Below are positions 62-12,043 of a stretch of DNA of 64,000 bases, in pieces. How positions within the stretch are numbered: position 1 is the first letter of the stretch; every line of letters starts with the position of its first letter. The stretch is from contig CP075496.1 in the NCBI GenBank assembly GCA_021613535.1, forward strand, positions 11,470,001 to 11,534,000, given 5' to 3'. The notes under the pieces were generated by a model. That model saw only the letters and a program-made list of their open reading frames with translations. It had not been told where the DNA came from and searched no databases. This DNA comes from Adineta vaga (taxonomy: Eukaryota > Animalia > Rotifera). Position numbers and translations under genes: made by a program.

Positions 62-3213
<3,152 letters not shown>

Positions 3214-3955
3214 GTTTATTTATGTTTCTTTTTTAAAATTTGAATGTTTATTTCCTGTATTGGTGATTATTCTCTCCTGTCATTTTGAACAGAAAGAAAA
3301 ATAAAGAGCCGTTGACTTTTTACTTTTTAAATATCATTTATGTGTGTTTATTTCTGTTTTGTTATATCATTGATTGCAATACACATTTTATTTACATCTC
3401 TTTATCACTGTGGGATTAAGATATATATATAATCAATAAATAGATACATGTGCGTTTTAACAATCGAGCTTATTTATATATAATCCTGAACATTATCTGA
3501 AGAATAATTGCATAGAAGAAAGTGAATTTATTATGCAATAGATTTCTATTAGAGAACGATGACTAGATCAAAGATAGTTTTGATTGAATACTTGATAATT
3601 GAATAATTAGCTTTAATTAAATTTGTCAATATCTATCGATGTATTAAGTCGAATTGAATTTATTTTTTTGAAAAGAATTAGTTTTTCTGTCTGTTGAACA
3701 CGTTGCACAAAAGAAAGGAGAGTCAATTTGTCTAAGAGTATTCGAACAATACAACAACAATGTTTATACAAAAGAAAATCAAGGGTGAATAGTATTAGAT
3801 TAATCACCACAATTATGAGTTTCTCTACAGCAAAACAAAAAAGACGATGACAGAAATTCATTCTCTTTGAATTAGAAAGAAAAAAAGGTAAAACTAATTG
3901 ATTAAAAACAAAGAAAACATGAGATTAAGAAAAGAAAAACAAAAAATTATCTTGA

Positions 3956-6900
3956 CTAGTTGTTTGCCGTAACATTAGCTGTTGCACTTGAGACAACTTC
4001 CATCCATCTAAAGAATTTTCATGGTAAATTTCAATGAAAAAGAGAAAATTTATTTACCGATCAAAGGCATATTGACTTTCAGCACGAAAGAAGTAGACAT
4101 GATTTTTAAATTGAAGTTTAAATACAAAATCTTTATTCACACCATCGATTTCTACTGGTAATGAACTACGATAACCCAATAAAGGTAAAGATGCTAATGG
4201 AAAATCATCCTAATAGAAAGAAAATTTCGTTCGATAATCATTTTTTTTCTCAAAATAATGTATCAATTTACTTGATAAGTTTTATAAAAGAATAAACAAA
4301 AATTCGTAAACACCACCCATAATTTTTGCCAACCATTTGAATTTTTAAATTTTCGTAATAAATATCCACTTAATTGATTTTTTATTGATTGTTGATGATT
4401 ATCCATTGATACTGAAAGATTTCGATGCCAACATACATGCATGGTTGTATTTGCACGATGTTGAATACAAGATCGTTCCATTGGATGCAAATTTTCCTCT
4501 TCTAATGTTCCAACAAATGAATGATCAAGATTTTCCGATGATGCTGAACAAAATCACGTATATAATATATATATATCCTTGCAAAAATGCATCATACCAT
4601 TCGATTTTAATGTAGATGTATATTGATTTTTCTGTTCTTCAGAAGTTATCTTGATATTTTCAATAGCTGTATTCAAATCATTTAACCATTTATGTTTTTC
4701 ACTTTCCGAACTAGAAGAACGAAATTACATACAGACTAGTACGAAAATTTATTGAATATACCTTGCAGCTACGAGTAATGATCGTGTACCAGTATGAATA
4801 GTAATTGAATTTGGAATTTTCGTTCGTTCATCACTATCTTCTACCTAGAATCATAAGAATAGAATTTCAACTGATCAAATATAGATTCAATACGAACGTT
4901 CATCAATTTTAATGGAAGTTCACCGTGTAATTTAAACTGTAAAACTGGACTTGAACCCCGAGCACAATAAAGTAAAACATCAGAGAACTAAAAATAGACT
5001 ATGTTAATTTTCAAGAAGACAAATGAAGTAGTTCTTACAAGAAAAAACATTCGTTGTTGATAACCTTTTCGTGATAATTTTTGTAAACAACCTTCACGTA
5101 TAAATAACTAAATAGAAGTAAATTGAGATCACATGTTTTCAATTCAAAATTTCTTACTCGATCGTGTAGGATAGATAGATTATCTACACCAATCAAATCA
5201 CGTTGAAGTTCAATTAATTTCTGTCGATTTTGCTAGAAAAGAAAGACATTATGAAACTTCTATGAACAAAAAGAAAGAGAATCAAAATTATACTAAGAAT
5301 GTTAATGATTCTGTAAAATTTTCAATAAGATCTTGAATTTTAATATAAATTCCATAACAATCTTGATAATCGATATCATGATTATTATGTCTATAATAAA
5401 CAAGTAATTCTAAAATAAGGAAACAATTGATTAATACAAGAAAAGATTGGCAATGTATAAATCGTTACTTTCAAGTAAACTTCCATAATGTAATAATCGT
5501 TGTAATGGTTTAAGTAGAAATGAAATAATTGATAAATAACAAAATTTTTGAGATTCAAATTCTTTATAAATCATATCAAAATGTCGATTATGTTTGAGGA
5601 TATATTCAAGTTCATTTAATAGATGTTCATAATTTTCGATGTAATTTTCATATTTCTAGAAAACAACAAATATTTATATGAAATAAAACTTTAATTATTT
5701 ACTGGAAAAATTTCCATCAAATTCATAATTAAATCACCGATATGTTGATTTGTTTTATCTCCATTTAAACATTCATTACTTGCAACTGAACGAGTTTCCC
5801 TATAAAGAATAAATTTGATGATATGCATCAGAAAATTCATGTCTTCATACCAAACAGATATTCTTTGTTCAAGTTGCCGAAGAAATTGACTATGAAAATT
5901 ATAAATCGGAACTAAATGTGTAAATAATAAATCTGATAAATTCACTAATGAATCATGTTCTGAATGAAACGATTGTTGAATCATATCATCAGTATCATTT
6001 AAATTATATAAATCATTTTGTTGATTGATAATCAACATTAATTCACGACGAAAACTATCCGCAATGACTTCAATATCTTTTTTATAAGTTCGTTCAGTCA
6101 TTAATAATTCTTTGCAGATGAAAAATGCACGATCATGAATAGATGAGATGATCATTGTTGATGAAACAGATGTCGGAAAGATAACTGGTGCAGTAGGTGG
6201 TAGAACGGTACCAATTAATCGCTAAATAAATTATCCTTTAGTGAATCAATGACATTTAATCAAGGAGAAATATCATACCGGAATACCAGCAACTGCTTGT
6301 GTCATTTGATATGATGTGGAAGGGATTATTTTCGATGCTAAATTTCAAACAAAAAGATTGAGAAACTGTTCTTTAATTAATTCATTTCAAACGTAAGAAT
6401 ATCACGAATGTACTCGACATCTGTATATATTTACAGATCAATTTTAATGAGAATCTAAGGAAAAGATGGAAACCATCTGATAATCAATGATAAGATCTAC
6501 ATAGATTATTCAGTCGAATGGAACAAGACATGGGTACATTTTGTAATTCAACTTCTATCTAGTTTGTATTATTTTATGAATACATACGTGATTGATGATG
6601 TGTATTCGTTATTGCTCTTGATTCGATTTTATTTAAATTTATCGTTGTTGAACAATATTCATGAATAATTGGTGCTGTATGAGACTATGATAAACAAAAG
6701 AAGACATTAGATTTCACTGATTCTTTTTTTTGTCCTTGATTTTTCTTTGCTTCTAAGAACTTACTTTATCATTATCATCGATAATTGGATCGTCTTTTTT
6801 ATTCAATGAAAGTAGCGGTATATTTTCAGTAATTGAAGATCTTAAAAGAAGAATTGGTTTTTACTAAGTTCTAATCATTTTACTCTTATTATTCATTACC

Positions 6901-9900
6901 TTTTCGTAGGACTATTCATTTCAATATTCTCATCATATTGTTTATGTAAACTTAATCTTTTTGCAACAGAAATTAATTGTTGTTCAATATTAGAAGATTT
7001 TCGTGGTGGAGTTTGATTTATTTGAGATGGTATAGGTCGATGATTATTAACAAATCCACTAATTTCTCGTCGATGTTGATCATTTGTTACAATTGAATCT
7101 CCTGTAATTAAGAATAAAATTGATTCAAGTTTAAAGATCTCTTTTCATTTATATTCACTGTCTTCAATAAATCTGATCGGATTGATTATTTCTGTAGATT
7201 GTTTTCTTTGCTATTATTCTCTATCGCATTTATTTTCTTTCGTAATACATTATTTTCCAGAACGAGTTTCAACACGATACAAAAAAAGACAGAGAGAGAG
7301 AGAAAGAGAGAAAATCTTCACATATACGCATACAATTGTCAAGTTAAGCGAAACAACAAACAATTTATTATTTAGCATACAAACAAAAATCAGGGATATC
7401 ATCTAAACGTACGGATATATATATATATATATTATTTATTAATATAGAGACAAACAAACAGAAAGCGCGTACTGTTTACAAAGATAATCATAAGTCGCCG
7501 GGTTGAGTTATATGTTTGTTTATTTTTTTTCCAAAGAAAAAAGAAAGAAAGAGTGAACCGAATCATAATATAAGATAATCTATTACTACTATCTAACCCT
7601 CACTCGTTCTCATTCGCAATTCTTTTGTTTTGACTAACTAAATAAAGGCAAACACACCCACACACACACACATATATCTATATATATCCCTGATGATGTC
7701 AAAAAAAAAATAGAATTCCATGATCAACAGAAGAAAAAAGAACTACTACTCATATTCTTACTTACTTAAAATAGAAAGCGAAAATTAGTTTTTTTCATTA
7801 ATGATAAGACTAGAAGGAAAAAGAAAGAAAATCTGTACAAATTCAATAGAATAGATATGCCTAAAAGAGTAACAATATAATGACTAGGGAAAAACTGAAT
7901 GAAGAAGAAGAAAAATTTTAGTAGAACATGAAAAGAGAAAACCAAGAAGAGATCTATTCACTTGTTATGATGATGACGGTGAACAAAAACGGAACGAAAA
8001 CCCGCAGCTTTATTTAAATGATTTGAAAGTGAATCATCGCTTGAAGAATTGAGATTTTCATTTGAACGATGTTTTTGTTGTTGTTGATGGCGTCGTTGAG
8101 TACGCAATGGTGGGGGTGGAGGTTGAGATAGAGGAGATATAGGAGATGAAGCAGTCAGTTTTGGACTCGATGCAGTTGCTGGAATAATACAAGTTTTCAA
8201 ACTCGTACTTATCGATATTGTTGGATTTGAATCGGAATCATCACTAAAATCGAGTAGACGTGCGGATAATGGACGTTGATAGCGTTTCGATTGATTATCA
8301 AGAATAGGTGGACATGGAACATGCATAGATGATGCGTAAGATGATACAGATGAAGCACGAGAAGAACGCGTTGATGATGAAGATGAAATAACATTAGGAA
8401 CAGTAGAAGAATGAATAAAAAGAGGTGGAAGAGAAACAGAAGATTGTGATGGAGCTATATCATTCGAGACAATATTAAAAAATTTCAATTTAGCTTCAGA
8501 AAATGTCGAAAAATCGGAGCGTTGCAAGTCATGTAGATTATTTCCACTTGGATATGCTGCAAAACATGTTTGAGCAGCTAATTTACGACTGACATCAGTC
8601 CAATCTGTTGTTGTAGTAAATGCTGGACTTGATTTCGTGCGTAAACGTGAAACAAGATTGTTAGCATCATGTTCATTATCATTATTCGTATCAGTTTTTC
8701 CAGTTCGTAGAATACATGATTTATGATGAGGTATATGACAAGATCCAGCAAACATTTGCGCTCGACGTTCTAACATATATTGAGTCAATGCGCGTGAACA
8801 TGCTTGTTCGACAAGACGATCGACAGTAGCTAATAGTTGTCTTTCTTCTTCGACGATTTGTCTGAGAATTGATTCAATTATTTGTCGAGCTAATTCAATT
8901 ACATCTTCGGGAGTTTCTTTGTCAGACAATGGAATAGTTTGATCATTTGCGATTGTATCATCTTGCCATGAGAGACTATTGACTGATGGTAATGTACGTC
9001 GATCAATATATTCAACGTAATCTGTCATACGTGGTAATGAATGTGGTTTTGAACGAATTTCTAGAACTATTGGTGGTGATACATTTCGTAATGAGATATC
9101 TTCATGAGTATCGTTGATTTTCGAACCAAGTAAACGTTCGATTAATGGTGGTTCTAAGATAGATGATGAGGAAGATGAGGGTGAATTTGATGGTGAATGA
9201 GTTAAATCTAACGATAATGCCCGTTGACTTTGCAATGAATGTGAACGTTGTTGTTGTTGTTGTTGTTGTTCTTGATTTTGATTTGGTAAATCATTAGATA
9301 TCGGAGTAATACATATAGAATGAGATCCACCGGATGAATTTCGCGTATTTAAATACATTTTTAACGATGCTGAATAGCGTTTTACTAGTTCATTCTCATT
9401 TGATTTCTCTGATTCATCTTCTTTCCTCTGATTATTATTATTGTTATTATTATGATAAATTTCTAAGCATACTCGATTTTCTTTTTTATGATTCGATTCA
9501 CTGTAATCTTCTTCTTCCTCTTCATCATCATGAAAGTTTTTACGAAGAATATTTTCTACACCCGGCGACTTACCTTTATCTAATTCATTCGATTCACTAG
9601 CATATTTGGAATTTATCGATTGTTCAATGTCAATATTATCTTGGGAAGGAACAGTTATTTCCGGTTGTGATTGTGACAGTGGTGGTGGTGGAAGCGGTGG
9701 AGATGAGGCGGAGAACGATCCATTTGTTCGTTTTTCTGTCGATTCATCCTCTGGATTTTGGACATTTTCTTTGTCTTTATTATCTTCATCATCAGTATTT
9801 TCGTCATCTGATAAATCGTATTTATCTCGACTAAATCTTGAATCTAATGTTCGACTACCATGTGTTGATGAATCATCATGATAGACTTGCTGATAAACAT

Positions 9901-12043
9901 CATTTGGTGTTGTAGAAATTATTGCATCCGTATTTGCACTTTCTCCTATTGTAGTTGTTGTTGTCATGATTAATGTTTGATTTGTTATTGGAATTCCAAT
10001 TGGACGTGTTTGATAACGAGAAGAATCTGCTGATGATACGTTTGTATCTTGACTTCGCATTGTATCAGATGTTCGAAGTGCTGCACCAGGTGAACGATGT
10101 GAACGAGTACTTGGTGGTGCTACTGTTCGAGTATTGGAATACGATCTAAGAGAACAAAATAATATTATGATAAAAAAAAGAATGATTGAATGTCATTTTT
10201 CGAATGTTTTACCGATCAAATGTTCGACTTTTAACATAATGTTCACGTGCATATTCCGTCATTTCCTTTTGTGTTCGACCATTATATCGAAATGATGAAC
10301 CACGTGTTAATAGTCGAGTTCTTGAACGTGATGTTCGTTTAATAGTTACACAGCGAAAGAAAGCATGATATTCAATACATTTTTTCCAAAAATTTTTACA
10401 TTCATCACGTGTATGGAAATAAAATTCTACTGTATCTTTATAATAGCCCTTTGAATAGAAGAAGAAAAGGAAGGATTGTTTTGCTTTCCTTCAAATCAAT
10501 CAAACTTACATATCCTTCAGGTTGTAATTTGATAAGAAATTTTTTTCGTTTAAAACTTAATTTACGAATTTTTGCCCATGAAAACGTATTAATTTTCGTT
10601 ATATTTTGAAAGACAAGGATTCCCATATGCGCAACAGATAAATTAAGATTGACTTGTTCATGATCTTTAGCCGGATGCATTTTTATGCCATATAATTCAA
10701 CTTTCCGAGCGATATCAAGTAGATTAAGATCGGCATCAGCAGGAAATTGACCGCTTTAATTAACGAAAAAAAAACAGGATATATTTCGTTTATTCAAACG
10801 ATTTCTCTTGACATGAAAACTTACATATGATTCTTATGAAAATTCATTATACGAATTTCATTTTCAGCAGTTTGATGAAGAAAAAATTTTCTCCCACCAA
10901 GATAACTTGGATTATTATTATATGATTCCAGATAATCACCAATTTCCGCTAGAATAAAATTCAATTATACAAAAAAATGTCAAATTATCTTCTTTATCTC
11001 GATCTTCCCGTTTACCTTGAACGATATAAGAGGCAAGTAAAGCAGCAGTATTGTCACTACATAGTAGTGTACCAATATGAAGATCACGTTTAATTTGTAG
11101 CGCAAAGAGATACCTAAAAAGGAAAGTATTCAATAAGAAACAAGAGACTAAGATATTTTCGTGATTAAGAAAATTGAATTAGGATTTCGTCTTAGTCAAG
11201 GTTTTACTTGTTGATAAAGAGAGCAAATTGCATACTTGCCTCAGGGTGAATAAAGATTGAATGACGAAATAAATAAATAAGTAGGATACTTAAGAAAAGA
11301 TTTTTTACCTGGTAAATTCTTCTTCCAATTGTCCAGGATCTGGTGTATAAAATTTAACACAAAACGAAAATTTCGTGTCTGTAACTTGTTTAAGTACAGG
11401 TTTATCCATTTCCAACCAACACTAAATAAAAATAAATAATCAATATTATTTATCTTCTCTTTCCTTTCCATGTAATACATACAGCATTTCGATGGCTATC
11501 AAGGTATTCAAGCGCAAAATAATCAGTTTCCAGTAAATCAATAAAGTTACAAACAATTGTAAACAATTCTTGTCCAGTTGCTTTTGGCTAGAAAGAAAAA
11601 CGCAAACAATGTTTATAATGAAGCTCTTGAATCACTCAAGCAAATGTATAGATCGAGAGTAAATACAGATGAGACTTGTTTCTTCTGATAATAACTTCCA
11701 ATGTCATCATCATCATCTGAATCATAATGATGATGATAGACGTGTGGATCTGTATTTGTATGCAATAAGCAATTAACCTCGACCATCGTTGGAAAAGGCC
11801 ATTGCAAACACATACACAAATACGAGACTCCTATCTAGTGTTTCTGTTTTGACAAACTCATCATACAGTTGTTGACTATGATTGATAGCGCTTGATGTTA
11901 AATCGGGTACAAAATGACAAAAACTTCTGTGACATTTATTGGATACTTACATCAATATGAAATGGTAATTCTCGATCGTCGAGCATACGAACTTTACATG
12001 ATATTTGTTTGGCAGTTTTGGCTTTTGTCATTGTTGAACTCAT
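3956..12043 (-). CDS. FARP2: FERM, RhoGEF and PH domain protein (FARP1/2, Cdep-like), long isoform
   Basis: ATG 12043 ([23 protein letters not shown]). FERM exons ([32 protein letters not shown]), DH domain ([18 protein letters not shown]), PH1 ([20 protein letters not shown]) and PH2 ([33 protein letters not shown]). Phase-1 donor at 9574/9573 joins the phase-1 acceptor near 7102. TAG at 3956-3958. Confidence 0.9.
7491..7503 (-). promoter_or_regulatory. Element perfectly complementary to the FARP alternative 5' splice site (candidate long-range RNA pairing)
   Basis: Plus 7491-7503 taagtcgccgggt is the exact reverse complement of plus 9560-9572 acccggcgactta, which covers intron positions +2 to +14 of the donor. 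Confidence 0.55.
7958..9573 (-). CDS. Alternative terminal exon extension of FARP (FERM-only isoform with long disordered tail)
   Basis: The frame stays open for about 540 codons past the AAG|GTAAGT donor at 9574/9573, to TGA at 7958. Ser/Pro/Gln-rich, with a helical [17 protein letters not shown] segment. Confidence 0.7.

Follow-up and report, generated by a model that had tools for sequence, protein, structure and literature searches.

Among the closest described systems is a stem in the Drosophila gene CG33298, for which mutation and rescue show that it silences a donor and changes the C-terminus of the protein (Raker et al. 2009, PMC2724269). In Drosophila Nmnat, a long-range stem governs the choice between splicing and a polyadenylated internal last exon, so that two C-termini arise; its boxes flank an alternative acceptor, promote the distal outcome and cover no donor (PMC2724269). 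The ISTL1 pairing of human SMN2 is intronic, acts over a long distance near a donor and inhibits its use, which leads to exon skipping (PMC3783185). Among human genes, conserved long-range complementary regions are over-represented around 3′ ends and at splice sites that are seldom used (PMC8052449), and a conserved contest between a donor with its U1 and an intronic poly(A) site takes place in a large intron of CstF-77 (PMC3708835). At the protein level, the C. elegans FARP orthologue is made as frm-3a, FERM-FA with a domain-less tail, or frm-3b, FERM-FA-GEF-PH-PH, through alternative splicing within the last frm-3a exon (PMC7260190).

In this work, we analyse a predicted long-range RNA duplex at an internal donor of a FARP gene of the bdelloid rotifer Adineta vaga. 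The window is the whole stretch of DNA that was analysed, 64,000 nucleotides long. As in CG33298, a conserved box overlaps the proximal donor and pairs downstream. The distance is, however, 2.0–3.5 kb rather than 185 nt, there are two nested stems (H1 and H2, both with coding 5′ arms) instead of one, and the alternative is read-through with polyadenylation and not a distal donor. The outcome resembles that of Nmnat, although here the donor itself is covered. Like ISTL1, the pairing is a long-distance one near a donor that it may inhibit, whereas SMN2 has neither a composite last exon nor a coding 5′ arm. The human catalogue (PMC8052449) contains pairs of the same kind but excludes exons beyond 10 nt, so that H2 would escape it. 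Compared to CstF-77, where the donor is weak, the donor here is a strong consensus site, apparently weakened by pairing. The isoform pair is that of frm-3a/frm-3b, for which the accessible part of the report shows no RNA structure (PMC7260190), and our protein search with the tail returned no worm protein among its matches. Our literature search found no report of a structure at a FARP donor. By analogy, the FARP duplex may work like the CG33298 stem and decide the same kind of outcome as that of Nmnat. New with respect to the known stems are the range of 2.0–3.5 kb, the two nested helices with coding 5′ arms, and the setting of a consensus donor against polyadenylation.

FARP is a synaptic scaffold, the C. 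elegans counterpart of the isoform pair organises synapses, and the pairing probably helps to determine if the signalling half is included in the protein. As a compact element with deep conservation, the locus lends itself to asking if long-range pairing can link splicing with intronic polyadenylation, and in what direction, and also how a strong donor can be acted on by a partner that is transcribed kilobases later. It includes a natural control, a second gene copy without tail and duplex, and an RNA-level constraint hidden within coding sequence.

Results

The window lies on contig C4, and the FARP gene is on its minus strand. A domain search of the window exons matched a FERM_C exon and a RhoGEF exon, and the exons are contained in the public protein P0038 (Adineta vaga I4U23_020828), for which, as for its orthologues, FERM, FA, RhoGEF and PH are listed, in the domain order of the FARP family. 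The relevant parts of the gene are the following.

9574–10145, minus strand: part of the composite exon common to both forms; follows FERM-FA and runs up to the internal donor; homologous to the donor-ending exon of the second copy
7958–9573, minus strand: read-through tail, 538 codons and a stop; predicted to be mostly disordered, with one confident helix (residues 413–465, about 8908–8750) and no Pfam match
6899–7101, minus strand: first exon of the RhoGEF-PH half, with acceptor AG at 7103–7102; its phase matches the internal donor
3964–6898, minus strand: further exons with the RhoGEF and PH domains, from the P0038 model and the domain search

An open frame of 728 codons, 10144–7958, crosses the donor and runs to the stop at 7958. 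For this read-through frame, over 20 relatives were found, with identities of 52–72%, and splicing from 9574 to 7101 is in phase both here and in all eight of the loci that reach the acceptor. With an internal donor, a conserved read-through frame with a stop, and an in-phase acceptor downstream, the exon has the make-up of a composite terminal exon. The 2.5-kb intron is far longer than the other introns of the gene. We infer that splicing at the composite last exon would give FERM-FA-RhoGEF-PH-PH, and that ignoring the donor would give FERM-FA with a tail of 538 residues. A protein of this second kind, P0021 (1061 aa), comes from an intron-free contig of 3519 nt from another species, which we read as that species' spliced short-form mRNA. 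The intron-free contigs of this FERM-tail form, L025 and L038 (1061 aa, from another species), end 112–123 nt past the stop, before the 3′ arms of the duplex.

The original prediction saw here an alternative 5′ splice site that switches between FERM-only and FERM-RhoGEF forms. Its two outcomes fit the anatomy and the intron-free short-form contig found elsewhere, but the short form is more than FERM, since it has the conserved 538-residue tail. The notion of an alternative 5′ splice site has to be replaced by a choice between splicing and read-through with polyadenylation in a composite last exon; there is no second conserved donor.

No match to the tail was found in Pfam or the Atlas, and its structure prediction (mean pLDDT 40) contains no folded domain and one long helix. 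This 53-residue helix, at about 8750–8908 on the minus strand, is conserved, has conserved short blocks around it and belongs to no known family.

The internal donor, AAG/GUAAGU with +1 at 9573, is the best U1 match of the whole tail in nine of nine loci, and its GU is retained even where the codon switches from Gly to Ser. The public gene models do not use it. Seven of them, of about 1750 aa, read through; the models P0033–P0040 (1570–1780 aa; P0038 for A. vaga) run past this donor as well and are spliced from weak sites close to the tail's end, which differ among them. We tried these sites as a conserved end-of-tail donor and rejected them, as they differ between species and each lacks GT in some loci; their U1 pairing is weak. 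The public models of about 1750 aa are probably fusions of two isoforms, which suggests that the predictions for FARP are misjoined in this way in seven bdelloid genomes. The consensus, the phase and the homology to the donor of the second copy support a putative use of the internal donor. In a separate pair of entries, P0041 and P0020, one frame ends five codons past the donor motif and the other begins after it; these are either broken tails or assembly errors.

We now turn to the duplex, whose elements are given here together with those found around its 3′ arms.

9560–9581, minus strand: H1 5′ arm, donor and GC-rich positions +7 to +14, coding for G-K-S-P-G in the read-through frame; from sequence and conservation
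7482–7503, minus strand: H1 3′ arm, noncoding, conserved across loci
9486–9502, minus strand: H2 5′ arm, coding for S-E-S-N-H-K; from synonymous constraint and conservation
7552–7568, minus strand: H2 3′ arm, noncoding, nearly invariant across loci
9506–9519, minus strand: purine-rich extension of H2 (poly-Glu codons), with a U/C tract at about 7549–7537 as partner predicted by cofolding; low complexity, weak evidence
7684–7694, minus strand: 5′ arm of H3, a weaker helix enclosing both 3′ arms; from a partner search
7389–7399, minus strand: H3 3′ arm; from a partner search
7454–7479, minus strand: conserved small hairpin (loop GCGCUUU) that immediately follows the H1 3′ arm; may be bound by a protein
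7229–7234, minus strand: AAUAAA, conserved in the loci, candidate poly(A) signal of the short mRNA

H1 pairs 9573–9560 with 7503–7490 on the minus strand and covers donor positions +1 to +14. The geometry is as originally claimed for the arms 9560–9581 and 7482–7503: 13 perfect pairs at intron positions +2 to +14 (with 7503–7491), a G-U pair at +1, a 2×2 internal loop and six exonic pairs. The 5′ arm, on the other hand, had been placed in noncoding DNA and is coding, within the 728-codon frame. The calculated duplex energy of H1 is −34 kcal/mol, versus −10.6 kcal/mol for U1 pairing. The claim that a chance match on a donor is unlikely holds up in two ways. Within 5 kb, no other exact 13-mer inverted repeat of the whole 64-kb window has more than five G/C, and when each of the 109 GT(A/G)AG sites of the window is scanned against its own next 3 kb, H1 ranks first with −33.4, the others giving −17.2 ± 3.1 and the best of them −24.6.

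The duplex is larger than had been predicted, as there is a second helix of similar strength. H2, 17 bp with one G-U, pairs 9502–9486 with 7568–7552, about 70 nt after the donor, and is nested in H1. The six codons of its 5′ arm are synonymously invariant, and nowhere else in the exon do four or more such codons follow one another; against a background invariance of 5.5% at 4/6-fold and 39% at 2/3-fold codons, the synonymous sites of the arms are frozen. H3 pairs 7694–7684 with 7399–7389 and is weaker than both.

For the comparison across bdelloids, orthologous loci were fetched by protein and not by arm sequence; all counts are over related, non-independent loci. Both helices are kept in all ten distinct orthologous loci that reach the 3′ arms, with joint interaction energies of −31 to −64 kcal/mol, versus means of −8 to −18 for shuffled sequences. 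This includes Didymodactylos carnosus, which is sister to the other sequenced bdelloids (PMC7943196). Its tail is only 41% identical and its intron about 4 kb long, and both helices are retained; H1 is 19 bp there, with an extension of its own and a change from U-A to C-G at +14. The downstream arm, the conservation of which had been proposed as a check, accompanies the read-through exon in every locus that has retained it and is missing from the copy without this exon. Boxes that pair beyond chance over a long distance and are both conserved across species, as expected of a long-range splice-regulating structure, are found at this locus. As far as sequences can tell, the helices can form and both arms are under selection.

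In the H1 core (+1 to +13), 130 of 130 cells are paired in the ten loci. Five changes have occurred there, all pair-keeping and all one-sided: C-G to U-G at +9 (in two lineages) and at +10, U-A to U-G at +2, and G-U to G-C at +1. Three changes on the 5′ side alter the peptide yet preserve the pairing. That five of five keep their pairs has a chance of 0.0002–0.006 under simple models, with core limits that were set after the data had been seen and loci that are related. The covariation in H1 is for these reasons supportive and not conclusive: position +14 is unpaired in five of the ten loci, the sole two-sided change of H1 sits at this edge position, and neither the H1 nor the H2 core has a two-sided change. 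It is the conservation of the noncoding arms, more than covariation, that carries most weight for the duplex.

The AAUAAA at 7234–7229 is present in eight of nine loci (the ninth has AAGAAA), lies downstream of both 3′ arms and, in loci that include the acceptor, stands 111–134 nt before it. Starting from the donor, the order is the H2 3′ arm at 2005 nt, the H1 3′ arm at 2070 nt, the poly(A) signal 256 nt further and the acceptor another 127 nt on. Two other AAUAAA motifs, at 7524 and 7440, had originally been named as poly(A) signals; they are present at these places, but they are not conserved and were ruled out.

Other elements lie near the 3′ arms. The GCGCUUU hairpin also occurs in the second FARP copy of A. 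steineri (L039, about 3927–3958) with a change from C-G to U-A, its energy being weak (−2 to −7 kcal/mol), and was not found in the A. vaga second copy. Between 7260 and 7400 of the window, several other conserved UG-rich and YGCY blocks precede the poly(A) signal and are possible protein-binding or 3′-end elements. Apart from H3, the conserved UTR blocks showed no consistent long-range pairing partner, and an Rfam search gave no match to a curated model at E ≤ 1.

The second FARP copy, on contig C1, we take to be a homoeologue that stems from bdelloid tetraploidy. It has a donor at the same place and in the same phase, without tail or duplex. The intron at the equivalent place is 1.1–1.9 kb long and its bases +7 to +13 vary freely. 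No duplex is common to the second copies of A. vaga and A. steineri; a weak one (−15 kcal/mol) at the A. vaga second-copy donor was rejected, as it is absent in A. steineri. The A. steineri second-copy intron can still be matched, in unchanged order, to the 3′ part of the orthologous intron, and in the distant proteins P0051, P0069, P0070 and their kin (900–1250 aa), perhaps of monogonont rotifers, the pre-donor motif and a tail motif are joined in one open frame. From these two observations, loss of tail and duplex in the second copy would be the simpler history. Separately, the second-copy intron has a conserved 45-nt element of its own, 87% identical between two Adineta species (L021, about 5060–5100; L039, about 3860–3900), despite having no tail.

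Discussion

The reading that we favour, and consider rather probable on the sequence evidence, is that the duplex displaces U1 and thereby promotes, or first permits, the polyadenylated FERM-tail mRNA at the expense of FERM-RhoGEF-PH. The H2 3′ arm would be made first, pair outside the U1 footprint and tether the ends. The H1 3′ arm would follow, with the GC-rich positions +9 to +13 beyond U1 serving as a toehold to displace it. When both 3′ arms have been transcribed, the poly(A) signal would still be about 260 nt away and the acceptor 390 nt, so that the donor could be hidden while there is no acceptor yet. The departure of U1 would block splicing and lift U1's block on cleavage, and polyadenylation would take place near 7234. 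As both arms remain in the short mRNA, its perfect donor would stay hidden there as well, and the transcript would escape nuclear retention. The isoform ratio may, speculatively, be set by proteins that bind the conserved UG/YGCY blocks next to the 3′ arms. Nuclear retention has been described for mRNAs whose donor motifs are intact (PMC9074902).

Several points count against masking, among them public gene models that leave the donor unused and helix cores that have no two-sided change. A human survey proposes the opposite role, in which structure suppresses intronic cleavage (PMC8052449). A further point is one of timing. U1 is normally bound long before the 3′ arm is transcribed. The more specific picture is a two-step, late-acting switch, in which a coding docking helix tethers a 3′ UTR element 2–3.5 kb away; this element would remove U1 from a consensus donor shortly before transcription reaches the poly(A) signal and the acceptor, and would afterwards hide the donor in the mature mRNA. 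We put this forward tentatively, as a possibility that may well not hold. If true, intronic polyadenylation would here be turned on by structure, opposite to what has been proposed for human genes.

The main rival to masking is an RNA bridge. With the 2-kb tail looped out by the helices, no more than about 400 nt would separate donor and acceptor, and the long isoform would be promoted or rescued from cleavage; H1 would be opened by U1 or a helicase. The location of H2, 72 nt after the donor and near the 60-nt mean of Drosophila intronic boxes (PMC2724269), would suit a bridge, as would an intron far exceeding the others of the gene; the Nmnat stem promotes the distal, non-polyadenylated outcome (PMC2724269), and a similar model exists for human genes (PMC8052449). 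Nevertheless, we judge it unlikely, as H1 covers +1 to +13 and far exceeds U1 pairing in strength, the loop does not contain the poly(A) signal, and the second copy manages an intron of 1.1–1.9 kb at the same place without a duplex. Another option is that the duplex acts only in the finished short mRNA, between coding region and 3′ UTR, on translation, localisation or stability, with splicing unchanged. In its favour, the conserved AAUAAA comes after both 3′ arms, the 5′ arms are each coding, and numerous further conserved UTR blocks are found around them, but such a role does not need H1 to be centred exactly on the exon's one strong donor, which makes it decidedly improbable.

Masking also has to be weighed against readings in which the donor is edited or never used. 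An exon-intron duplex is the layout of known editing sites, and the 3′ arms, in a duplex of about 60 imperfect pairs, could be editing-complementary sequences that let ADAR edit the donor adenosines or recode SESNHK. However, the helices are short and separated by a large loop, and the intron-free contigs have no A-to-G change in the H1 arm, and we regard editing as very unlikely. The duplex could instead shut a cryptic site, with the long form spliced from a tail-end donor as in the seven read-through public models. This proposal is highly improbable: the models choose different end donors with weak U1 pairing, each without GT in some loci, the internal donor equals that of the second copy in place and phase, and a useless donor could vanish by a silent change. 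That the 5′ arms are coding might finally point to protein constraint, or else the complementarity to chance. This explanation is refuted by conservation and has next to no probability left, given the null scans, the frozen synonymous sites and noncoding arms whose conservation reaches back to the deepest bdelloid split sampled.

Two minor observations concern the surroundings of the gene. The 15-mer GGTAAGTCGTCGAGT has at least nine copies in the genome, is probably a repeat and is, as far as seen, unrelated to the FARP locus. At 62–3213 on the plus strand, a TBC1D23-like gene, recognised by eye in the window, stands tail to tail with FARP, and it does so also in the orthologous loci L022 and L030.
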